Shown here: positions 14,682 to 44,158 of the stretch, one piece after another
How positions within the stretch are numbered: the stretch's first letter is position 1
How the letters are laid out: each line of letters starts with the position of its first letter
Assembly: GCA_965202585.1 (NCBI GenBank)
Contig: OZ241826.1
Location: 91,388,001 to 91,452,000 of the forward strand
Length of the DNA: 64,000 nt
From: Thalia democratica
Taxonomy: Eukaryota
Direction of reading: 5' to 3'
Notes under the pieces: model-generated
Seen by the model: only the letters and a program-made list of their open reading frames with translations
What the model was told of the DNA's origin: nothing
The model's database searches: none
Made by a program: the position numbers and the translations under genes

Positions 14682-15255
14682 TTAGTTTAGTTGAAATATC
14701 AAGAGTTTATGAAGTAAAATAACGATACGAGTTGCATGGAAGCTGAAAAAACAAAAAATACTGATTAAATTTAGAAAAATTCACTTTCTTTTCGTTTTGG
14801 TGTCGAACTGAATTTTCAGCATCTTCATGATCAGGTTCCTGTTGCTCATCTTCTTCAGGTTTTTGCTCAGCTTCTTGTAAAACGTCAGCTCGCCGTTCCG
14901 AGACTCGTAGTAGCGGTTGAGCAGGGCGAGAACGGACAGGCCGAGCATGCACACGGTGAACACCACGCACACGATCATGCACGCGACGAAGAACACTTCG
15001 AAGTCCAAAAAGTCCGTTATCTTCGTCGCCTCCCTACTTTCAGTCATGACCATGTGTCTCAGCTGGTCGTCGAGCTTTTTCTTCGTGTGCTCGTCCTGGA
15101 GAGATATGTCGAAAAGTGTCGACCTCATCATTTGTTTCAGCTGCGCCACTCCGCTGTAGTCCAAAGATGGCATGGAGGCGAGCAAGTGGGCGTAAAGGTT
15201 CTTGAAGGTCATCGCGGCCGTGCTTCATGTCCTTTTCCGGCGCCTTCGGCAGCAT
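14682..15255 (-). pseudogene. Copy 13 (A2) with 8-bp frameshift deletion; only an N-truncated product from MTFKNL remains open
   Basis: gtgct[gtcttgct]tcatg deletion at about 15221-15224. Confidence 0.6.
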
Positions 15256-29666: not shown

Positions 29667-30295
29667 CTGCGGCTTGATTTTGCGTTTACCAAAATCATTA
29701 AAAAATTGTGTCCGCAAATTTGCATAATTCTCTTCTTTTCGAATAATTTCGCTCTCTCCTTCTTAATTTTGCACACAAATTCACACCTCCAACCGAACTG
29801 ACGCGTATATATACGAGCTTCGGCATGGACGCTTTGATAAGAAAACAAGAGGCGTTCAGCATTATCAATAAAAACACGGCCTCCCAACAGTGACGAAACG
29901 CATTGATTCTCATGTGTCTAAATATATTTGTATACAAAGGTAAAATCAACAGACAATAGCGACTTAGCGACTTAGCGACTTGGCGTGCTTGGCCATAATA
30001 GCACATTAGATGTCTTATTGTAAGCTTATTTTTAAATTAGAACTGATAAAATTTAAACACTGTGAGTTTATTGAAAATAAATACGACTTACGCGCAAAAT
30101 AAAAAAACAGAAACAGTTGTACAAATTTAGAAACATTCATTTTACTAAAGTTTAAACTAAAGTTTTAAAAATGTTGTTGAAAACAAAAAAATATAAAATA
30201 CGCAATCGTTTTGTGCAAATAAATGCCAGTTTATAGTATGATGATATAGTTGCCAGTTGTTTATTGAGAATAAAAGAAAATTGGGCTTCATGCAA

Positions 30296-30877
30296 TTAGT
30301 TTAGTTGAAATATCAAGAGTTTATGAAGTAAAATAACGATACGAGTTGCATGGAAGCTGAAAAAACAAAAAATACTGATTAAATTTAGAAAAATTCTCTT
30401 TCTTTTCGTTTTGGTGTCGAACTGAATTTTCAGCATCTTCATGATCAGGTTCCTGTTGCTCATCTTCTTCAGGTTCTTGCTCAGCTTCTTGTAAAACGTC
30501 AGCTCGCCGTTCCGAGACTCGTAGTAGCGGTTGAGCAGGGCGAGAACGGACAGGCCGAGCATGCACACGGTGAACACCACGCACACGATCATGCACGCGA
30601 CGAAGAACACTTCGAAGTCCAAAAAGTCCGTTATCTTCGTCGCCTCCCTACTTTCAGTCATGACCATGTGTCTCAGCTGGTCGTCGAGCTTTTTCTTCGT
30701 GTGCTCGTCCTGGAGAGATATGTCGAAAAGTGTCGACCTCATCATTTGTTTCAGCTGCGCCACTCCGCTGTAGTCCAAAGATGGCATGGAGGCGAGCAAG
30801 TGGGCGTAAAGGTTCTTGAAGGTCATCGCGGCCGTGCTGTCTTGCTTCATGTCCTTTTCCGGCGCCTTCGGCAGCAT
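30296..30877 (-). CDS. Copy 26 (A3): donor-less read-through form, 193 aa
   Basis: GTGAAT>GAGAAT at 30397; ORF continues to the same TAA. Confidence 0.65.
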   Translation of the reverse strand: MLPKAPEKDMKQDSTAAMTFKNLYAHLLASMPSLDYSGVAQLKQMMRSTLFDISLQDEHTKKKLDDQLRHMVMTESREATKITDFLDFEVFFVACMIVCVVFTVCMLGLSVLALLNRYYESRNGELTFYKKLSKNLKKMSNRNLIMKMLKIQFDTKTKRKRIFLNLISIFCFFSFHATRIVILLHKLLIFQLN

Positions 30878-31498
30878 CTGCGGCTTGATTTTGCGTTTAC
30901 CAAAATCATTAAAAAATTGTGTCCGCAAATTTGCATAATTCTCTTCTTTTCGAATAATTTCGCTCTCTCCTTCTTAATTTTGCACACAAATTCACACCTC
31001 CAACCGAACTGACGCGTATATATACGAGCTCCGGCATAGACACTTTGATAAGAAGAGAAGAGGCGTTCAGCATTATCAATAAAAACACGGCCTCCCAACA
31101 GTGACGAAACGCATTGATTCTCATGTGTCTAAATATATTTGTATACAAAGGTAAAATCAACAGACAATAGCGACTTAGCGACTTGGCGTGCTTGGCCATA
31201 ATAGCACATTAGATGTCTTATTGTAAGCTTATTTTTAAATTAGAACTGATAAAATTTAAACACTGTGAGTTTATTGAAAATAAATACGACTTACGCGCAA
31301 AATAAAAAAACAGAAACAGTTGTACAAATTTAGAAACATTCATTTTACTAAAGTTTAAACTAAAGTTTTAAAAATGTTGTTGAAAACAAAAAAATATAAA
31401 ATACGCAATCGTTTTGTGCAAATAAATGCCAGTTTATAGTATGATGATATAGTTGCCAGTTGTTTATTGAGAATAAAAGAAAATTGGGCTTCATGCAA

Positions 31499-32072
31499 TT
31501 AGTTTAGTTGAAATATCAAGAGTTTATGAAGTAAAATAACGATACGAGTTGCATGGAAGCTGAAAAAACAAAAAATACTGATTAAATTTAGAAAAATTCA
31601 CTTTCTTTTCGTTTTGGTGTCGAACTGAATTTTCAGCATCTTCATGATCAGGTTCCTGTTGCTCATCTTCTTCAGGTTTTTGCTCAGCTTCTTGTAAAAC
31701 GTCAGCTCGCCGTTCCGAGACTCGTAGTAGCGGTTGAGCAGGGCGAGAACGGACAGGCCGAGCATGCACACGGTGAACACCACGCACACGATCATGCACG
31801 CGACGAAGAACACTTCGAAGTCCAAAAAGTCCGTTATCTTCGTCGCCTCCCTACTTTCAGTCATGACCATGTGTCTCAGCTGGTCGTCGAGCTTTTTCTT
31901 CGTGTGCTCGTCCTGGAGAGATATGTCGAAAAGTGTCGACCTCATCATTTGTTTCAGCTGCGCCACTCCGCTGTAGTCCAAAGATGGCATGGAGGCGAGC
32001 AAGTGGGCGTAAAGGTTCTTGAAGGTCATCGCGGCCGTGCTTCATGTCCTTTTCCGGCGCCTTCGGCAGCAT
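31499..32072 (-). pseudogene. Copy 27 (A2-type) with the 8-bp frameshift deletion
   Basis: Deletion at about 32038-32041; splice donor intact. Confidence 0.6.
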
Positions 32073-32693
32073 CTGCGGCTTGATTTTGCGTTTACCAAAA
32101 TCATTAAAAAATTGTGTCCGCAAATTTGCATAATTCTCTTCTTTTCGAATAATTTCGCTCTCTCCTTCTTAATTTTGCACACAAATTCACACCTCCAACC
32201 GAACTGACGCGTATATATACGAGCTTCGGCATGGACGCTTTGATAAGAAAACAAGAGGCGTTCAGCATTATCAATAAAAACACGGCCTCCCAACAGTGAC
32301 GAAACGCATTGATTCTCATGTGTCTAAATATATTTGTATACAAAGGTAAAATCAACAGACAATAGCGACTTAGCGACTTGGCGTGCTTGGCCATAATAGC
32401 ACATTAGATGTCTTATTGTAAGCTTATTTTTAAATTAGAACTGATAAAATTTAAACACTGTGAGTTTATTGAAAATAAATACGACTTACGCGCAAAATAA
32501 AAAAACAGAAACAGTTGTACAAATATAGAAACATTCATTTTACTAAAGTTTAAACTAAAGTTTTAAAAATGTTGTTGAAAACAAAAAAATATAAAATACG
32601 CAATCGTTTTGTGCAAATAAATGCCAGTTTATAGTATGATGATATAGTTGCCAGTTGTTTATTGAGAATAAAAGAAAATTGGGCTTCATGCAA

Positions 32694-33275
32694 TTAGTTT
32701 AGTTGAAATATCAAGAGTTTATGAAGTAAAATAACGATACGAGTTGCATGGAAGCTGAAAAAACAAAAAATACTGATTAAATTTAGAAAAATTCTCTTTC
32801 TTTTCGTTTTGGTGTCGAACTGAATTTTCAGCATCTTCATGATCAGGTTCCTGTTGCTCATCTTCTTCAGGTTCTTGCTCAGCTTCTTGTAAAACGTCAG
32901 CTCGCCGTTCCGAGACTCGTAGTAGCGGTTGAGCAGGGCGAGAACGGACAGGCCGAGCATGCACACGGTGAACACCACGCACACGATCATGCACGCGACG
33001 AAGAACACTTCGAAGTCCAAAAAGTACGTTATCTTCGTCGCCTCCCTACTTTCAGTCATGACCATGTGTCTCAGCTGGTCGTCGAGCTTTTTCTTCGTGT
33101 GCTCGTCCTGGAGAGATATGTCGAAAAGTGTCGACCTCATCATTTGTTTCAGCTGCGCCACTCCGCTGTAGTCCAAAGATGGCATGGAGGCGAGCAAGTG
33201 GGCGTAAAGGTTCTTGAAGGTCATCGCGGCCGTGCTGTCTTGCTTCATGTCCTTTTCCGGCGCCTTCGGCAGCAT
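32694..33275 (-). CDS. Copy 28 (A3), 193 aa read-through, ITYFLD variant
   Basis: 210-aa track ORF minus the 17-codon TTG leader. Confidence 0.65.
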   Translation of the reverse strand: MLPKAPEKDMKQDSTAAMTFKNLYAHLLASMPSLDYSGVAQLKQMMRSTLFDISLQDEHTKKKLDDQLRHMVMTESREATKITYFLDFEVFFVACMIVCVVFTVCMLGLSVLALLNRYYESRNGELTFYKKLSKNLKKMSNRNLIMKMLKIQFDTKTKRKRIFLNLISIFCFFSFHATRIVILLHKLLIFQLN

Positions 33276-33896
33276 CTGCGGCTTGATTTTGCGTTTACCA
33301 AAATCATTAAAAAATTGTGTCCGCAAATTTGCATAATTCTCTTCTTTTCGAATAATTTCGCTCTCTCCTTCTTAATTTTGCACACAAATTCACACCTCCA
33401 ACCGAACTGACGCGTATATATACGAGCTCCGGCATAGACACTTTGATAAGAAGAGAAGAGGCGTTCAGCATTATCAATAAAAACACGGCCTCCCAACAGT
33501 GACGAAACGCATTGATTCTCATGTGTCTAAATATATTTGTATACAAAGGTAAAATCAACAGACAATAGCGACTTAGCGACTTGGCGTGCTTGGCCATAAT
33601 AGCACATTAGATGTCTTATTGTAAGCTTATTTTTAAATTAGAACTGATAAAATTTAAACACTGTGAGTTTATTGAAAATAAATACGACTTACGCGCAAAA
33701 TAAAAAAACAGAAACAGTTGTACAAATTTAGAAACATTCATTTTACTAAAGTTTAAACTAAAGTTTTAAAAATGTTGTTGAAAACAAAAAAATATAAAAT
33801 ACGCAATCGTTTTGTGCAAATAAATGCCAGTTTATAGTATGATGATATAGTTGCCAGTTGTTTATTGAGAATAAAAGAAAATTGGGCTTCATGCAA

Positions 33897-34478
33897 TTAG
33901 TTTAGTTGAAATATCAAGAGTTTATGAAGTAAAATAACGATACGAGTTGCATGGAAGCTGAAAAAACAAAAAATACTGATTAAATTTAGAAAAATTCTCT
34001 TTCTTTTCGTTTTGGTGTCGAACTGAATTTTCAGCATCTTCATGATCAGGTTCCTGTTGCTCATCTTCTTCAGGTTCTTGCTCAGCTTCTTGTAAAACGT
34101 CAGCTCGCCGTTCCGAGACTCGTAGTAGCGGTTGAGCAGGGCGAGAACGGACAGGCCGAGCATGCACACGGTGAACACCACGCACACGATCATGCACGCG
34201 ACGAAGAACACTTCGAAGTCCAAAAAGTACGTTATCTTCGTCGCCTCCCTACTTTCAGTCATGACCATGTGTCTCAGCTGGTCGTCGAGCTTTTTCTTCG
34301 TGTGCTCGTCCTGGAGAGATATGTCGAAAAGTGTCGACCTCATCATTTGTTTCAGCTGCGCCACTCCGCTGTAGTCCAAAGATGGCATGGAGGCGAGCAA
34401 GTGGGCGTAAAGGTTCTTGAAGGTCATCGCGGCCGTGCTGTCTTGCTTCATGTCCTTTTCCGGCGCCTTCGGCAGCAT
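33897..34478 (-). CDS. Copy 29 (A3), 193 aa read-through, ITYFLD
   Basis: As copy 28. Confidence 0.65.
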   Translation of the reverse strand: MLPKAPEKDMKQDSTAAMTFKNLYAHLLASMPSLDYSGVAQLKQMMRSTLFDISLQDEHTKKKLDDQLRHMVMTESREATKITYFLDFEVFFVACMIVCVVFTVCMLGLSVLALLNRYYESRNGELTFYKKLSKNLKKMSNRNLIMKMLKIQFDTKTKRKRIFLNLISIFCFFSFHATRIVILLHKLLIFQLN

Positions 34479-35107
34479 CTGCGGCTTGATTTTGCGTTTA
34501 CCAAAATCATTAAAAAATTGTGTCCGCAAATTTGCATAATTCTCTTCTTTTCGAATAATTTCGCTCTCTCCTTCTTAATTTTGCACACAAATTCACACCT
34601 CCAACCGAACTGACGCGTATATATACGAGCTTCGGCATGGACGCTTTGATAAGAAAACAAGAGGCGTTCAGCATTATCAATAAAAACACGGCCTCCCAAC
34701 AGTGACGAAACGCATTGATTCTCATGTGTCTAAATATATTTGTATACAAAGGTAAAATCAACAGACAATAGCGACTTAGCGACTTAGCGACTTGGCGTGC
34801 TTGGCCATAATAGCACATTAGATGTCTTATTGTAAGCTTATTTTTAAATTAGAACTGATAAAATTTAAACACTGTGAGTTTATTGAAAATAAATACGACT
34901 TACGCGCAAAATAAAAAAACAGAAACAGTTGTACAAATTTAGAAACATTCATTTTACTAAAGTTTAAACTAAAGTTTTAAAAATGTTGTTGAAAACAAAA
35001 AAATATAAAATACGCAATCGTTTTGTGCAAATAAATGCCAGTTTATAGTATGATGATATAGTTGCCAGTTGTTTATTGAGAATAAAAGAAAATTGGGCTT
35101 CATGCAA

Positions 35108-35689
35108 TTAGTTTAGTTGAAATATCAAGAGTTTATGAAGTAAAATAACGATACGAGTTGCATGGAAGCTGAAAAAACAAAAAATACTGATTAAATTTAG
35201 AAAAATTCTCTTTCTTTTCGTTTTGGTGTCGAACTGAATTTTCAGCATCTTCATGATCAGGTTCCTGTTGCTCATCTTCTTCAGGTTTTTGCTCAGCTTC
35301 TTGTAAAACGTCAGCTCGCCGTTCCGAGACTCGTAGTAGCGGTTGAGCAGGGCGAGAACGGACAGGCCGAGCATGCACACGGTGAACACCACGCACACGA
35401 TCATGCACGCGACGAAGAACACTTCGAAGTCTAAAAAGTCCGTTATCTTCGTCGCCTCCCTACTTTCAGTCATGACCATGTGTCTCAGCTGGTCGTCGAG
35501 CTTTTTCTTCGTGTGCTCGTCCTGGAGAGATATGTCGAAAAGTGTCGACCTCATCATTTGTTTCAGCTGCGCCACTCCGCTGTAGTCCAAAGATGGCATG
35601 GAGGCGAGCAAGTGGGCGTAAAGGTTCTTGAAGGTCATCGCGGCCGTGCTGTCTTGCTTCATGTCCTTTTCCGGCGCCTTCGGCAGCAT
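35108..35689 (-). CDS. Copy 30 (A3), 193 aa read-through, ITDFLD
   Basis: Donor SNP present, D>Y absent. Confidence 0.65.
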   Translation of the reverse strand: MLPKAPEKDMKQDSTAAMTFKNLYAHLLASMPSLDYSGVAQLKQMMRSTLFDISLQDEHTKKKLDDQLRHMVMTESREATKITDFLDFEVFFVACMIVCVVFTVCMLGLSVLALLNRYYESRNGELTFYKKLSKNLKKMSNRNLIMKMLKIQFDTKTKRKRIFLNLISIFCFFSFHATRIVILLHKLLIFQLN

Positions 35690-36318
35690 CTGCGGCTTGA
35701 TTTTGCGTTTACCAAAATCATTAAAAAATTGTGTCCGCAAATTTGCATAATTCTCTTCTTTTCGAATAATTTCGCTCTCTCCTTCTTAATTTTGCACACA
35801 AATTCACACCTCCAACCGAACTGACGCGTATATATACGAGCTCCGGCATAGACACTTTGATAAGAAGAGAAGAGGCGTTCAGCATTATCAATAAAAACAC
35901 GGCCTCCCAACAGTGACGAAACGCATTGATTCTCATGTGTCTAAATATATTTGTATACAAAGGTAAAATCAACAGACAATAGCGACTTAGCGACTTAGCG
36001 ACTTGGCGTGCTTGGCCATAATAGCACATTAGATGTCTTATTGTAAGCTTATTTTTAAATTAGAACTGATAAAATTTAAACACTGTGAGTTTATTGAAAA
36101 TAAATACGACTTACGCGCAAAATAAAAAAACAGAAACAGTTGTACAAATTTAGAAACATTCATTTTACTAAAGTTTAAACTAAAGTTTTAAAAATGTTGT
36201 TGAAAACAAAAAAATATAAAATACGCAATCGTTTTGTGCAAATAAATGCCAGTTTATAGTATGATGATATAGTTGCCAGTTGTTTATTGAGAATAAAAGA
36301 AAATTGGGCTTCATGCAA

Positions 36319-36900
36319 TTAGTTTAGTTGAAATATCAAGAGTTTATGAAGTAAAATAACGATACGAGTTGCATGGAAGCTGAAAAAACAAAAAATACTG
36401 ATTAAATTTAGAAAAATTCTCTTTCTTTTCGTTTTGGTGTCGAACTGAATTTTCAGCATCTTCATGATCAGGTTCCTGTTGCTCATCTTCTTCAGGTTCT
36501 TGCTCAGCTTCTTGTAAAACGTCAGCTCGCCGTTCCGAGACTCGTAGTAGCGGTTGAGCAGGGCGAGAACGGACAGGCCGAGCATGCACACGGTGAACAC
36601 CACGCACACGATCATGCACGCGACGAAGAACACTTCGAAGTCCAAAAAGTACGTTATCTTCGTCGCCTCCCTACTTTCAGTCATGACCATGTGTCTCAGC
36701 TGGTCGTCGAGCTTTTTCTTCGTGTGCTCGTCCTGGAGAGATATGTCGAAAAGTGTCGACCTCATCATTTGTTTCAGCTGCGCCACTCCGCAGTAGTCCA
36801 AAGATGGCATGGAGGCGAGCAAGTGGGCGTAAAGGTTCTTGAAGGTCATCGCGGCCGTGCTGTCTTGCTTCATGTCCTTTTCCGGCGCCTTCGGCAGCAT
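36319..36900 (-). CDS. Copy 31 (A3), 193 aa read-through, private S>C
   Basis: LDYCGV in translation. Confidence 0.65.
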   Translation of the reverse strand: MLPKAPEKDMKQDSTAAMTFKNLYAHLLASMPSLDYCGVAQLKQMMRSTLFDISLQDEHTKKKLDDQLRHMVMTESREATKITYFLDFEVFFVACMIVCVVFTVCMLGLSVLALLNRYYESRNGELTFYKKLSKNLKKMSNRNLIMKMLKIQFDTKTKRKRIFLNLISIFCFFSFHATRIVILLHKLLIFQLN

Positions 36901-37529
36901 CTGCGGCTTGATTTTGCGTTTACCAAAATCATTAAAAAATTGTGTCCGCAAATTTGCATAATTCTCTTCTTTTCGAATAATTTCGCTCTCTCCTTCTTAA
37001 TTTTGCACACAAATTCACACCTCCAACCGAACTGACGCGTATATATACGAGCTCCGGCATAGACACTTTGATAAGAAGAGAAGAGGCGTTCAGCATTATC
37101 AATAAAAACACGGCCTCCCAACAGTGACGAAACGCATTGATTCTCATGTGTCTAAATATATTTGTATACAAAGGTAAAATCAACAGACAATAGCGACTTA
37201 GCGACTTAGCGACTTGGCGTGCTTGGCCATAATAGCACATTAGATGTCTTATTGTAAGCTTATTTTTAAATTAGAACTGATAAAATTTAAACACTGTGAG
37301 TTTATTGAAAATAAATACGACTTACGCGCAAAATAAAAAAACAGAAACAGTTGTACAAATTTAGAAACATTCATTTTACTAAAGTTTAAACTAAAGTTTT
37401 AAAAATGTTGTTGAAAACAAAAAAATATAAAATACGCAATCGTTTTGTGCAAATAAATGCCAGTTTATAGTATGATGATATAGTTGCCAGTTGTTTATTG
37501 AGAATAAAAGAAAATTGGGCTTCATGCAA

Positions 37530-38111
37530 TTAGTTTAGTTGAAATATCAAGAGTTTATGAAGTAAAATAACGATACGAGTTGCATGGAAGCTGAAAAAAC
37601 AAAAAATACTGATTAAATTTAGAAAAATTCTCTTTCTTTTCGTTTTGGTGTCGAACTGAATTTTCAGCATCTTCATGATCAGGTTCCTGTTGCTCATCTT
37701 CTTCAGGTTCTTGCTCAGCTTCTTGTAAAACGTCAGCTCGCCGTTCCGAGACTCGTAGTAGCGGTTGAGCAGGGCGAGAACGGACAGGCCGAGCATGCAC
37801 ACGGTGAACACCACGCACACGATCATGCACGCGACGAAGAACACTTCGAAGTCCAAAAAGTACGTTATCTTCGTCGCCTCCCTACTTTCAGTCATGACCA
37901 TGTGTCTCAGCTGGTCGTCGAGCTTTTTCTTCGTGTGCTCGTCCTGGAGAGATATGTCGAAAAGTGTCGACCTCATCATTTGTTTCAGCTGCGCCACTCC
38001 GCTGTAGTCCAAAGATGGCATGGAGGCGAGCAAGTGGGCGTAAAGGTTCTTGAAGGTCATCGCGGCCGTGCTGTCTTGCTTCATGTCCTTTTCCGGCGCC
38101 TTCGGCAGCAT
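37530..38111 (-). CDS. Copy 32 (A3), 193 aa read-through
   Basis: As copy 28. Confidence 0.65.
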   Translation of the reverse strand: MLPKAPEKDMKQDSTAAMTFKNLYAHLLASMPSLDYSGVAQLKQMMRSTLFDISLQDEHTKKKLDDQLRHMVMTESREATKITYFLDFEVFFVACMIVCVVFTVCMLGLSVLALLNRYYESRNGELTFYKKLSKNLKKMSNRNLIMKMLKIQFDTKTKRKRIFLNLISIFCFFSFHATRIVILLHKLLIFQLN

Positions 38112-38740
38112 CTGCGGCTTGATTTTGCGTTTACCAAAATCATTAAAAAATTGTGTCCGCAAATTTGCATAATTCTCTTCTTTTCGAATAATTTCGCTCT
38201 CTCCTTCTTAATTTTGCACACAAATTCACACCTCCAACCGAACTGACGCGTATATATACGAGCTCCGGCATAGACACTTTGATAAGAAGAGAAGAGGCGT
38301 TCAGCATTATCAATAAAAACACGGCCTCCCAACAGTGACGAAACGCATTGATTCTCATGTGTCTAAATATATTTGTATACAAAGGTAAAATCAACAGACA
38401 ATAGCGACTTAGCGACTTAGCGACTTGGCGTGCTTGGCCATAATAGCACATTAGATGTCTTATTGTAAGCTTATTTTTAAATTAGAACTGATAAAATTTA
38501 AACACTGTGAGTTTATTGAAAATAAATACGACTTACGCGCAAAATAAAAAAACAGAAACAGTTGTACAAATTTAGAAACATTCATTTTACTAAAGTTTAA
38601 ACTAAAGTTTTAAAAATGTTGTTGAAAACAAAAAAATATAAAATACGCAATCGTTTTGTGCAAATAAATGCCAGTTTATAGTATGATGATATAGTTGCCA
38701 GTTGTTTATTGAGAATAAAAGAAAATTGGGCTTCATGCAA

Positions 38741-39322
38741 TTAGTTTAGTTGAAATATCAAGAGTTTATGAAGTAAAATAACGATACGAGTTGCATGGAA
38801 GCTGAAAAAACAAAAAATACTGATTAAATTTAGAAAAATTCTCTTTCTTTTCGTTTTGGTGTCGAACTGAATTTTCAGCATCTTCATGATCAGGTTCCTG
38901 TTGCTCATCTTCTTCAGGTTCTTGCTCAGCTTCTTGTAAAACGTCAGCTCGCCGTTCCGAGACTCGTAGTAGCGGTTGAGCAGGGCGAGAACGGACAGGC
39001 CGAGCATGCACACGGTGAACACCACGCACACGATCATGCACGCGACGAAGAACACTTCGAAGTCCAAAAAGTACGTTATCTTCGTCGCCTCCCTACTTTC
39101 AGTCATGACCATGTGTCTCAGCTGGTCGTCGAGCTTTTTCTTCGTGTGCTCGTCCTGGAGAGATATGTCGAAAAGTGTCGACCTCATCATTTGTTTCAGC
39201 TGCGCCACTCCGCTGTAGTCCAAAGATGGCATGGAGGCGAGCAAGTGGGCGTAAAGGTTCTTGAAGGTCATCGCGGCCGTGCTGTCTTGCTTCATGTCCT
39301 TTTCCGGCGCCTTCGGCAGCAT
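38741..39322 (-). CDS. Copy 33 (A3), 193 aa read-through
   Basis: As copy 28. Confidence 0.65.
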   Translation of the reverse strand: MLPKAPEKDMKQDSTAAMTFKNLYAHLLASMPSLDYSGVAQLKQMMRSTLFDISLQDEHTKKKLDDQLRHMVMTESREATKITYFLDFEVFFVACMIVCVVFTVCMLGLSVLALLNRYYESRNGELTFYKKLSKNLKKMSNRNLIMKMLKIQFDTKTKRKRIFLNLISIFCFFSFHATRIVILLHKLLIFQLN

Positions 39323-39951
39323 CTGCGGCTTGATTTTGCGTTTACCAAAATCATTAAAAAATTGTGTCCGCAAATTTGCATAATTCTCTTCTTTTCGAAT
39401 AATTTCGCTCTCTCCTTCTTAATTTTGCACACAAATTCACACCTCCAACCGAACTGACGCGTATATATACGAGCTCCGGCATAGACACTTTGATAAGAAG
39501 AGAAGAGGCGTTCAGCATTATCAATAAAAACACGGCCTCCCAACAGTGACGAAACGCATTGATTCTCATGTGTCTAAATATATTTGTATACAAAGGTAAA
39601 ATCAACAGACAATAGCGACTTAGCGACTTAGCGACTTGGCGTGCTTGGCCATAATAGCACATTAGATGTCTTATTGTAAGCTTATTTTTAAATTAGAACT
39701 GATAAAATTTAAACACTGTGAGTTTATTGAAAATAAATACGACTTACGCGCAAAATAAAAAAACAGAAACAGTTGTACAAATTTAGAAACATTCATTTTA
39801 CTAAAGTTTAAACTAAAGTTTTAAAAATGTTGTTGAAAACAAAAAAATATAAAATACGCAATCGTTTTGTGCAAATAAATGCCAGTTTATAGTATGATGA
39901 TATAGTTGCCAGTTGTTTATTGAGAATAAAAGAAAATTGGGCTTCATGCAA

Positions 39952-40533
39952 TTAGTTTAGTTGAAATATCAAGAGTTTATGAAGTAAAATAACGATACGA
40001 GTTGCATGGAAGCTGAAAAAACAAAAAATACTGATTAAATTTAGAAAAATTCTCTTTCTTTTCGTTTTGGTGTCGAACTGAATTTTCAGCATCTTCATGA
40101 TCAGGTTCCTGTTGCTCATCTTCTTCAGGTTCTTGCTCAGCTTCTTGTAAAACGTCAGCTCGCCGTTCCGAGACTCGTAGTAGCGGTTGAGCAGGGCGAG
40201 AACGGACAGGCCGAGCATGCACACGGTGAACACCACGCACACGATCATGCACGCGACGAAGAACACTTCGAAGTCCAAAAAGTACGTTATCTTCGTCGCC
40301 TCCCTACTTTCAGTCATGACCATGTGTCTCAGCTGGTCGTCGAGCTTTTTCTTCGTGTGCTCGTCCTGGAGAGATATGTCGAAAAGTGTCGACCTCATCA
40401 TTTGTTTCAGCTGCGCCACTCCGCTGTAGTCCAAAGATGGCATGGAGGCGAGCAAGTGGGCGTAAAGGTTCTTGAAGGTCATCGCGGCCGTGCTGTCTTG
40501 CTTCATGTCCTTTTCCGGCGCCTTCGGCAGCAT
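39952..40533 (-). CDS. Copy 34 (A3), 193 aa read-through
   Basis: As copy 28. Confidence 0.65.
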   Translation of the reverse strand: MLPKAPEKDMKQDSTAAMTFKNLYAHLLASMPSLDYSGVAQLKQMMRSTLFDISLQDEHTKKKLDDQLRHMVMTESREATKITYFLDFEVFFVACMIVCVVFTVCMLGLSVLALLNRYYESRNGELTFYKKLSKNLKKMSNRNLIMKMLKIQFDTKTKRKRIFLNLISIFCFFSFHATRIVILLHKLLIFQLN

Positions 40534-41162
40534 CTGCGGCTTGATTTTGCGTTTACCAAAATCATTAAAAAATTGTGTCCGCAAATTTGCATAATTCTCT
40601 TCTTTTCGAATAATTTCGCTCTCTCCTTCTTAATTTTGCACACAAATTCACACCTCCAACCGAACTGACGCGTATATATACGAGCTCCGGCATAGACACT
40701 TTGATAAGAAGAGAAGAGGCGTTCAGCATTATCAATAAAAACACGGCCTCCCAACAGTGACGAAACGCATTGATTCTCATGTGTCTAAATATATTTGTAT
40801 ACAAAGGTAAAATCAACAGACAATAGCGACTTAGCGACTTAGCGACTTGGCGTGCTTGGCCATAATAGCACATTAGATGTCTTATTGTAAGCTTATTTTT
40901 AAATTAGAACTGATAAAATTTAAACACTGTGAGTTTATTGAAAATAAATACGACTTACGCGCAAAATAAAAAAACAGAAACAGTTGTACAAATTTAGAAA
41001 CATTCATTTTACTAAAGTTTAAACTAAAGTTTTAAAAATGTTGTTGAAAACAAAAAAATATAAAATACGCAATCGTTTTGTGCAAATAAATGCCAGTTTA
41101 TAGTATGATGATATAGTTGCCAGTTGTTTATTGAGAATAAAAGAAAATTGGGCTTCATGCAA

Positions 41163-41744
41163 TTAGTTTAGTTGAAATATCAAGAGTTTATGAAGTAAAA
41201 TAACGATACGAGTTGCATGGAAGCTGAAAAAACAAAAAATACTGATTAAATTTAGAAAAATTCTCTTTCTTTTCGTTTTGGTGTCGAACTGAATTTTCAG
41301 CATCTTCATGATCAGGTTCCTGTTGCTCATCTTCTTCAGGTTCTTGCTCAGCTTCTTGTAAAACGTCAGCTCGCCGTTCCGAGACTCGTAGTAGCGGTTG
41401 AGCAGGGCGAGAACGGACAGGCCGAGCATGCACACGGTGAACACCACGCACACGATCATGCACGCGACGAAGAACACTTCGAAGTCCAAAAAGTACGTTA
41501 TCTTCGTCGCCTCCCTACTTTCAGTCATGACCATGTGTCTCAGCTGGTCGTCGAGCTTTTTCTTCGTGTGCTCGTCCTGGAGAGATATGTCGAAAAGTGT
41601 CGACCTCATCATTTGTTTCAGCTGCGCCACTCCGCTGTAGTCCAAAGATGGCATGGAGGCGAGCAAGTGGGCGTAAAGGTTCTTGAAGGTCATCGCGGCC
41701 GTGCTGTCTTGCTTCATGTCCTTTTCCGGCGCCTTCGGCAGCAT
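41163..41744 (-). CDS. Copy 35 (A3), 193 aa read-through
   Basis: As copy 28. Confidence 0.65.
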   Translation of the reverse strand: MLPKAPEKDMKQDSTAAMTFKNLYAHLLASMPSLDYSGVAQLKQMMRSTLFDISLQDEHTKKKLDDQLRHMVMTESREATKITYFLDFEVFFVACMIVCVVFTVCMLGLSVLALLNRYYESRNGELTFYKKLSKNLKKMSNRNLIMKMLKIQFDTKTKRKRIFLNLISIFCFFSFHATRIVILLHKLLIFQLN

Positions 41745-42365
41745 CTGCGGCTTGATTTTGCGTTTACCAAAATCATTAAAAAATTGTGTCCGCAAATTTG
41801 CATAATTCTCTTCTTTTCGAATAATTTCGCTCTCTCCTTCTTAATTTTGCACACAAATTCACACCTCCAACCGAACTGACGCGTATATATACGAGCTCCG
41901 GCATAGACACTTTGATAAGAAGAGAAGAGGCGTTCAGCATTATCAATAAAAACACGGCCTCCCAACAGTGACGAAACGCATTGATTCTCATGTGTCTAAA
42001 TATATTTGTATACAAAGGTAAAATCAACAGACAATAGCGACTTAGCGACTTGGCGTGCTTGGCCATAATAGCACATTAGATGTCTTATTGTAAGCTTATT
42101 TTTAAATTAGAACTGATAAAATTTAAACACTGTGAGTTTATTGAAAATAAATACGACTTACGCGCAAAATAAAAAAACAGAAACAGTTGTACAAATTTAG
42201 AAACATTCATTTTACTAAAGTTTAAACTAAAGTTTTAAAAATGTTGTTGAAAACAAAAAAATATAAAATACGCAATCGTTTTGTGCAAATAAATGCCAGT
42301 TTATAGTATGATGATATAGTTGCCAGTTGTTTATTGAGAATAAAAGAAAATTGGGCTTCATGCAA

Positions 42366-42947
42366 TTAGTTTAGTTGAAATATCAAGAGTTTATGAAGTA
42401 AAATAACGATACGAGTTGCATGGAAGCTGAAAAAACAAAAAATACTGATTAAATTTAGAAAAATTCTCTTTCTTTTCGTTTTGGTGTCGAACTGAATTTT
42501 CAGCATCTTCATGATCAGGTTCCTGTTGCTCATCTTCTTCAGGTTCTTGCTCAGCTTCTTGTAAAACGTCAGCTCGCCGTTCCGAGACTCGTAGTAGCGG
42601 TTGAACAGGGCGAGAACGGACAGGCCGAGCATGCACACGGTGAACACCACGCACACGATCATGCACGCGACGAAGAACACTTCGAAGTCCAAAAAGTACG
42701 TTATCTTCGTCGCCTCCCTACTTTCAGTCATGACCATGTGTCTCAGCTGGTCGTCGAGCTTTTTCTTCGTGTGCTCGTCCTGGAGAGATATGTCGAAAAG
42801 TGTCGACCTCATCATTTGTTTCAGCTGCGCCACTCCGCTGTAGTCCAAAGATGGCATGGAGGCGAGCAAGTGGGCGTAAAGGTTCTTGAAGGTCATCGCG
42901 GCCGTGCTGTCTTGCTTCATGTCCTTTTCCGGCGCCTTCGGCAGCAT
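42366..42947 (-). CDS. Copy 36 (A3), 193 aa read-through, private L>F at end of TM
   Basis: LALFNR in translation. Confidence 0.65.
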   Translation of the reverse strand: MLPKAPEKDMKQDSTAAMTFKNLYAHLLASMPSLDYSGVAQLKQMMRSTLFDISLQDEHTKKKLDDQLRHMVMTESREATKITYFLDFEVFFVACMIVCVVFTVCMLGLSVLALFNRYYESRNGELTFYKKLSKNLKKMSNRNLIMKMLKIQFDTKTKRKRIFLNLISIFCFFSFHATRIVILLHKLLIFQLN

Positions 42948-43576
42948 CTGCGGCTTGATTTTGCGTTTACCAAAATCATTAAAAAATTGTGTCCGCAAAT
43001 TTGCATAATTCTCTTCTTTTCGAATAATTTCGCTCTCTCCTTCTTAATTTTGCACACAAATTCACACCTCCAACCGAACTGACGCGTATATATACGAGCT
43101 CCGGCATAGACACTTTGATAAGAAGAGAAGAGGCGTTCAGCATTATCAATAAAAACACGGCCTCCCAACAGTGACGAAACGCATTGATTCTCATGTGTCT
43201 AAATATATTTGTATACAAAGGTAAAATCAACAGACAATAGCGACTTAGCGACTTAGCGACTTGGCGTGCTTGGCCATAATAGCACATTAGATGTCTTATT
43301 GTAAGCTTATTTTTAAATTAGAACTGATAAAATTTAAACACTGTGAGTTTATTGAAAATAAATACGACTTACGCGCAAAATAAAAAAACAGAAACAGTTG
43401 TACAAATTTAGAAACATTCATTTTACTAAAGTTTAAACTAAAGTTTTAAAAATGTTGTTGAAAACAAAAAAATATAAAATACGCAATCGTTTTGTGCAAA
43501 TAAATGCCAGTTTATAGTATGATGATATAGTTGCCAGTTGTTTATTGAGAATAAAAGAAAATTGGGCTTCATGCAA

Positions 43577-44158
43577 TTAGTTTAGTTGAAATATCAAGAG
43601 TTTATGAAGTAAAATAACGATACGAGTTGCATGGAAGCTGAAAAAACAAAAAATACTGATTAAATTTAGAAAAATTCTCTTTCTTTTCGTTTTGGTGTCG
43701 AACTGAATTTTCAGCATCTTCATGATCAGGTTCCTGTTGCTCATCTTCTTCAGGTTCTTGCTCAGCTTCTTGTAAAACGTCAGCTCGCCGTTCCGAGACT
43801 CGTAGTAGCGGTTGAGCAGGGCGAGAACGGACAGGCCGAGCATGCACACGGTGAACACCACGCACACGATCATGCACGCGACGAAGAACACTTCGAAGTC
43901 CAAAAAGTACGTTATCTTCGTCGCCTCCCTACTTTCAGTCATGACCATGTGTCTCAGCTGGTCGTCGAGCTTTTTCTTCGTGTGCTCGTCCTGGAGAGAT
44001 ATGTCGAAAAGTGTCGACCTCATCATTTGTTTCAGCTGCGCCACTCCGCTGTAGTCCAAAGATGGCATGGAGGCGAGCAAGTGGGCGTAAAGGTTCTTGA
44101 AGGTCATCGCGGCCGTGCTGTCTTGCTTCATGTCCTTTTCCGGCGCCTTCGGCAGCAT
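43577..44158 (-). CDS. Copy 37 (A3), 193 aa read-through
   Basis: As copy 28. Confidence 0.65.
   Translation of the reverse strand: MLPKAPEKDMKQDSTAAMTFKNLYAHLLASMPSLDYSGVAQLKQMMRSTLFDISLQDEHTKKKLDDQLRHMVMTESREATKITYFLDFEVFFVACMIVCVVFTVCMLGLSVLALLNRYYESRNGELTFYKKLSKNLKKMSNRNLIMKMLKIQFDTKTKRKRIFLNLISIFCFFSFHATRIVILLHKLLIFQLN

Follow-up and report, generated by a model that had tools for sequence, protein, structure and literature searches.

A 64,000-nt stretch of the genome of Thalia democratica (contig OZ241826.1 of assembly GCA_965202585.1, forward-strand positions 91,388,001 to 91,452,000; hereafter the window) is filled by head-to-tail units of about 1.2 kb, each with a small minus-strand open reading frame (ORF), and in 11 of these units a single T to A change turns a TGA codon into AGA. 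Comparison of the copies with each other and with full-length relatives indicates that this is probably a plain stop-loss variant, in which the TGA is a true stop, the AT-rich sequence that follows it is 3' untranslated region (UTR), and splicing plays no part. The protein of this family would thus ordinarily end ...IQFDTKTKRK at the TGA, with the AT-rich UTR running from there to an AATAAA about 130 nt on, and the altered units, if translated, would gain 33 residues encoded by T-rich UTR.

A probable stop-loss allele in a tandem array

The window holds the 3' ends of 54 copies of the ORF, and the whole array, at G000:C1:91380058-91456687, holds 63. When the 54 copies in the window were compared, GAGAAT was found in place of GTGAAT in copies 26 and 28-37, or 11 of the 63 array copies. 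The minus-strand reading of these copies is ...AAAAGAAAGAGAATTTTTC, against ...AAAGTGAA... in all the others, and the substitution falls at window positions 30397, 32795, 33998, 35209, 36420, 37631, 38842, 40053, 41264, 42467 and 43678. In the 802-Mb assembly, exactly 11 occurrences of a 26-mer specific to the A allele were counted, all of them within the window. The substitution and its distribution among copies had been reported in a first-pass annotation of this DNA, and both the copy-by-copy reading and the 26-mer count bear that report out. Copy 27, which lies inside the block of altered units, retains the TGA, and close to its 5' end it has lost 8 bp, which shifts the frame.

Without splicing, the TGA copies would encode 160 amino acids (aa), ending ...KTKRK-stop. 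In copy 26 a frame of 193 aa opens with the ATG at 30877, passes through the AGA and closes with the TAA at 30296-30298, and this next in-frame stop stands 33 codons beyond the lost one, ahead of the AATAAA. There is no further in-frame stop in the 42 bases from 30398 to 30357; here too the earlier annotation had both the arithmetic and the sequence of the tail right. An open run of 33 codons is not exceptional in so T-rich a stretch, being reached by 12% of shuffles. The peptide RIFLNLISIFCFFSFHATR is one that the extension would contribute to the 193-aa read-through product. The allele had also been described as travelling with an aspartate to tyrosine change (GAC>TAC, codon 84), which holds for 9 of the 11 A-allele copies and fails for copies 26 and 30, where aspartate (GAC) is retained. 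An AAG variant at K134 is also linked to the A allele.

The TGA as the probable stop codon of the family

A BLAST search of one unit against the right-hand flank of the array located the source of the units. Each contains the last ~165 codons of a longer gene, 240 nt of its 3' sequence and ~480 nt of its downstream flank; the match begins at about position 1525 of the parent's coding sequence (CDS), extends to 240 nt beyond the stop and continues into the flank, and because of this the units can be read as 5'-truncated copies of that parent, whose 3' third has been amplified by itself 62 times. The parent is intact and intronless, encodes 674 aa on the minus strand (L034:2764-4788, equivalent to G000:C1:91454663-91456687) and sits at the upstream end of the array, just outside the window; its protein has an N-terminal signal-like segment and a transmembrane segment near the C-terminus. 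A full-length paralogue, 46% identical to the parent, is found at C1:36009216-36011258 (L031:5202-7265), and environmental assemblies supplied the relatives P0004 (682 aa, 67% identity) and P0005 (47%).

In an alignment of the parent, P0004, the paralogue and P0005 the C-termini coincide to within one residue, just past a conserved NRNLI..L.IQFDT motif, and the same end was found in 13 further environmental fragments, one rearranged contig excepted. The paralogue continues beyond its TGA for only ~45 nt before reaching CTCAATAAAC, which is homologous to the poly(A) region of the array, and there is therefore no space in it for an intron followed by a 20-codon exon.

This bears directly on the alternative put forward in the first-pass annotation, which held that the TGA copies carry a real GT-AG intron of 42 nt, that their normal product is a spliced form of 179 aa ending ...KTKRN-FHATRIVILLHKLLIFQLN, and that the SNP (single-nucleotide polymorphism) destroys donor and intronic stop together, the 193-aa form arising by retention. 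The sequence does look the part: GTGAAT or GTGAAC at the start and a run of six to ten T with (C)AG at the end were found in 52 of 52 TGA copies, with GA in the 11 A copies, and the spliced frame would be open to the TAA in most copies. This genome, moreover, does have donors without G at +5. The donor-like GT has a simple origin in the lysine codon AAG that directly precedes the TGA. We nevertheless consider it unlikely that the segment is a real, regularly used intron, as neither the intron nor the exon has a counterpart in the paralogue, which stops at the same terminal residue, and a 179-aa normal product is hard to reconcile with the parent, the paralogue and the environmental relatives all ending at the TGA residue.

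The length of the segment points the same way. Most copies have 42 nt here, the parent and copies 47 and 54 have 40 nt, and the environmental contig L049 has 39 nt, so that the argument from in-frame retention is restricted to the 42-nt copies. Twenty-seven introns could be mapped precisely in actin-family genes of this genome (loci including L040, L041, L044, L047 and L048), and these range from 68 to 1286 nt with a median of 249; all are longer than the 39-42 nt segment. For 26 of the 27 a GT-AG solution was obtained, 15 of these 26 beginning GTT, and the exon gaps in tubulin genes are all about 200 nt or more.

Conservation among the 63 copies falls away at the TGA. Variable columns number 22 of 374 over the last 374 coding nucleotides, with zero indels, against 13 of 42 in the supposed intron, 12 of 61 in the supposed terminal exon (Fisher p = 0.0009 versus the CDS), 6 of 36 in the remaining UTR and 78 of 215 farther downstream, and pairwise counts agree with these column counts. 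The supposed exon is thus as variable as the UTR, and it is not kept in frame either: a 1-nt deletion shifts it in copies 45, 46, 52, 53 and 55, and an early TGA truncates it in L049. Together, the conserved C-terminus and the drop in conservation make the TGA most likely the true stop of the family, and the version in which 179 aa is the ordinary product and the SNP exonises an intron seems improbable to us.

Several observations weigh against this conclusion. Changes in the supposed exon divide into 6 synonymous and 7 non-synonymous with copy 26 as reference, a split that is not clearly distinct from the ratio in the coding part, and they lean weakly to third codon positions (7 of 13, p = 0.10), as the intron model would have it. 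The GT, the T-run and the AG are retained in all TGA copies, and also where the interior of the segment has diverged (copies 47 and 54, the parent and L049). The sample of 27 introns is small. Finally, the environmental proteins, P0004 among them, are ORF calls on DNA contigs that an intronic in-frame TGA would also have ended, because such calls stop at any in-frame TGA, and on their own they are no test of splicing.

A variant of the intron model supposes that splicing persists in the A allele, the intron now having GA-AG ends, in which case the 11 copies would yield the same protein as the others. Introns of this kind are common in another pelagic tunicate, Oikopleura dioica (PMC7072748), but the genome at hand measures about 802 Mb and its introns are long, GA-AG ends were seen in 0 of the 26 that were resolved, and the described context AG|GAA (PMC7072748) differs from the AA|GAGAAT found here. 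As all of the evidence against the intron applies equally, we regard this variant as extremely improbable. A wider Oikopleura-like picture, with introns of ~45 nt and frequent GA-AG, was considered and dropped, since the genome is about 802 Mb in size, its introns are long and no GA-AG example was seen among those resolved. The coordinates of the features discussed are collected in Table 1.

Table 1. Coordinates in the window of the features that bear on the stop-loss allele
Feature	Position	Strand	Remarks
Stop-loss block, 11 units (copies 26, 28-37) with T>A	30296..44158	minus	Allele-specific reading of copies
Read-through ORF, copy 26	30296..30877	minus	160 ordinary and 33 extra codons (193 aa), then TAA
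Codon 161, copy 26	30395..30397	minus	AGA in 11 copies; TGA (stop) in the other 52, including the full-length parent
Codon 84, copy 28: TAC (Y)	33024..33026	minus	Same change in copies 29 and 31-37
Transmembrane segment (VFFVACMIVCVVFTVCMLGLSVLALL, residues 90-115)	30533..30610	minus	Aligns with the transmembrane segment of the full-length proteins
Proposed 42-nt intron (GTGAAT...TTTTTTCAG in TGA copies)	30357..30398	minus	Most likely start of 3' UTR
Proposed terminal exon	30296..30356	minus	58 nt (last base of a split codon and 19 codons), then TAA; most likely 3' UTR
AATAAA poly(A) signal within CTCAATAAAC	30260..30265	minus	Homologous to the signal after the paralogue's TGA

Age and spread of the allele

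Between the A-allele units and the TGA units next to them (copies 11-25) there are 3-10 mismatches per ~1160 nt (0.3-0.9%), and between the A-allele units and the distal families of the array there are ~60 mismatches (~5% between families). Two flank haplotypes carry the allele, one in copies 26, 28 and 30 and the other in copies 29 and 31-37. These figures fit a very recent allele, which would have arisen by a T>A change in one unit and been carried to 11 adjacent units by unequal crossing-over or gene conversion within the array. Array dynamics of this kind would account for the spread, and no observation on it requires selection.

An 8-bp micro-repeat, TAGCGACT, is present in the spacer between the units in 2.6 or 3.6 copies (window 29957-29985 and the equivalent positions), giving unit periods of 1203 or 1211 nt. 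Of the 11 A-allele units, 8 (copies 26, 30-35 and 37) have the longer form. The pattern of repeat lengths shows a mosaic of exchange inside the block.

The read-through tail

The extension is rich in phenylalanine, isoleucine and leucine because it is encoded by T-rich UTR. Its best 19-residue window (LISIFCFFSFHATRIVILL) has an approximate Kyte-Doolittle mean of 2.06 and an approximate summed biological-scale value of +1.2, with a histidine and an arginine in the middle, compared to approximately 2.8 and approximately -3.4 for the real transmembrane segment of the protein. The extension thus appears just marginally hydrophobic enough for a membrane helix, and the idea in the earlier annotation that it forms a true second transmembrane helix, which would change the topology of the protein, finds little encouragement in these values. 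In animals, SGTA-BAG6 recognises read-through products whose C-terminal extensions are hydrophobic, and these products are broken down (PMC10364623); for this reason destabilisation of the 193-aa product would be at least as likely as a new topology, and probably likelier than a tail that spans the membrane.

Apparent constraint on the truncated copies

Relative to the parent, the copies retain just the membrane-proximal part, the transmembrane segment and the cytoplasmic tail of what appears to be a class III fusogen-like protein. It is possible, though we are rather doubtful, that such truncated units are untranslated or silent altogether, in which case the SNP would have no consequence for any protein. 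The promoter, signal peptide and ectodomain of the parent are missing from them, and the main ATG is preceded by two out-of-frame upstream ATGs. The 5' ends, furthermore, differ between families: a 104-bp deletion alters this end in 16 copies, and an 8-bp deletion (AGCAAGAC) after codon 10 shifts the frame in copies 13, 17, 18 and 27 (units in the regions of window positions 14805, 19608, 20802 and 31622; for example 32030-32040), leaving an ORF of 143 aa from the next ATG. Farther along the gene the picture is a different one, as the last 124 codons are intact and free of indels in 63 of 63 copies, the coding part is 3-6 times less variable than the adjoining non-coding DNA, and the 45-codon cytoplasmic tail shows zero amino-acid changes.

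Variable sites in those last 124 codons (for example 30398-30772 in copy 26) comprise 11 synonymous and 13 non-synonymous sites, over ~76 and ~296 sites respectively. The truncated copies therefore look to be under purifying selection, the alternative being gene conversion with tracts that finish precisely at the stop codon. A much bolder proposal is that the units are working host genes for "anchor-only" mini-proteins, made up of the three parts just named and kept by selection in more than 60 copies, and that the 11-copy allele is a young, expanding variant with a new membrane-associating C-terminal tail. We think this highly unlikely; were it true, anchor-only proteins might, for instance, act against or control the full-length fusogen or related elements that carry env. 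A plain stop-loss in redundant copies remains the reading that we favour.

A further feature of the units is GACGCGTATATATACGAGCT, a near-palindromic motif with a TATA-like core that is kept in 53 of them, ~130 nt upstream of the ATG on the minus strand (window 29800-29819). It could be a candidate promoter element carried by each unit.

Wild populations, too, have this array or one closely related to it. A metagenome scan with the full-length alignment as query gave zero matches, and the C-terminal alignment recovered one contig, L049 (1128 nt; ENA ERZ1740070 NODE-134984). This contig and the proteins P0001 and P0023-P0031 from environmental assemblies show the same truncated gene, the spacer and the start of the next unit, and this is the basis for placing the array in the wild. 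The stop-loss allele is absent from these environmental sequences.

A gB-like parent gene

Searches of Pfam and PHROGs with the small ORF, the paralogue and the parent returned nothing above threshold, and neither the parent nor the paralogue was assigned to the Pfam families Glycoprotein_B, Rhabdo_glycop_FD or Monjiviricetes_fusion; sub-threshold matches to the gB and Rhabdo families were seen with just the distant homologues P0006, P0012 and P0013. An AlphaFold (AF2) model of the parent built with 18 homologues had a mean pLDDT (predicted local distance difference test) of 71, with the ectodomain at ~80, and a Foldseek search with this model against PDB gave herpesvirus gB at E = 1e-19. Against BFVD the matches were gB and the nyami-, chu- and rhabdo-like glycoproteins, at E-values from 1e-21 to 1e-14. 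Global template modelling scores (TM-scores) of the model were low, from 0.25 to 0.48, as is expected with multi-domain proteins in differing conformations. A language-model look-up on the parent produced the same gB-like lead. The model, which includes the long central helix, suggests that the parent protein has the class III fold of viral fusion glycoproteins (gB / G / gp64).

Two other gB-like open frames (611 and 445 aa), at G000:C1:19148978-19149544 and G000:C10:291451-292014, are more distantly related, with 29% identity over the central domain. The genome carries a small family of gB-like genes. No gag/pol-sized ORF was found within 5 kb of the parent; gB-type env genes of Ty3/gypsy elements have been described in tunicates (PMC13524379).

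Comparison with known systems

The allele behaves like known stop-loss variants, in that a stop has become a sense codon, translation would run into the 3' UTR as far as the next in-frame stop ahead of the poly(A) signal, and the extension owes its hydrophobic character to the T-richness of the UTR. It differs from the known single-copy cases in its setting, as it occupies 11 of 63 tandem paralogous copies, and any effect of the lost stop would be buffered for that reason.

Exonisation by loss of a 5' splice site is the other process that the sequence brings to mind. The substitution hits the T of a putative donor GT, and the 42-nt segment is a multiple of three in length and free of stops. 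Had it held, one base would have taken away donor and stop together and so given rise to new coding sequence at a stroke, an attractive case. The size of the segment, the 3' end of the paralogue and the lack of downstream coding constraint speak against an intron, and the evidence points instead to an everyday stop-loss in redundant tandem copies, probably of little consequence. There is also a likeness to the GA-AG introns of Oikopleura dioica and Eurytemora affinis (PMC7072748), as the A allele would make GT-AG into GA-AG in a pelagic tunicate; the AG|GAA consensus of those introns is not reproduced here, nor is there a GA-AG intron among the 26 resolved in this genome.

The parent gene invites comparison with the gB-type env genes of the Ty3/gypsy "errantiviruses" and with other endogenous viral glycoprotein genes of invertebrates, tunicates among them (PMC13524379), which it resembles in being intronless, in having a signal peptide and a C-terminal transmembrane segment, and in a predicted fold that matches herpesvirus gB and mononegavirus-like glycoproteins. 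Unlike them it is solitary, with neither a gag/pol-sized ORF within 5 kb nor a Pfam match at threshold, and its 3' third has been amplified alone. A gB-like fusogen gene in a pelagic tunicate, of which the anchor and cytoplasmic tail have been multiplied 62 times and apparently held under purifying selection, seems to us a more interesting outcome than the loss of a stop codon in 11 of the copies.

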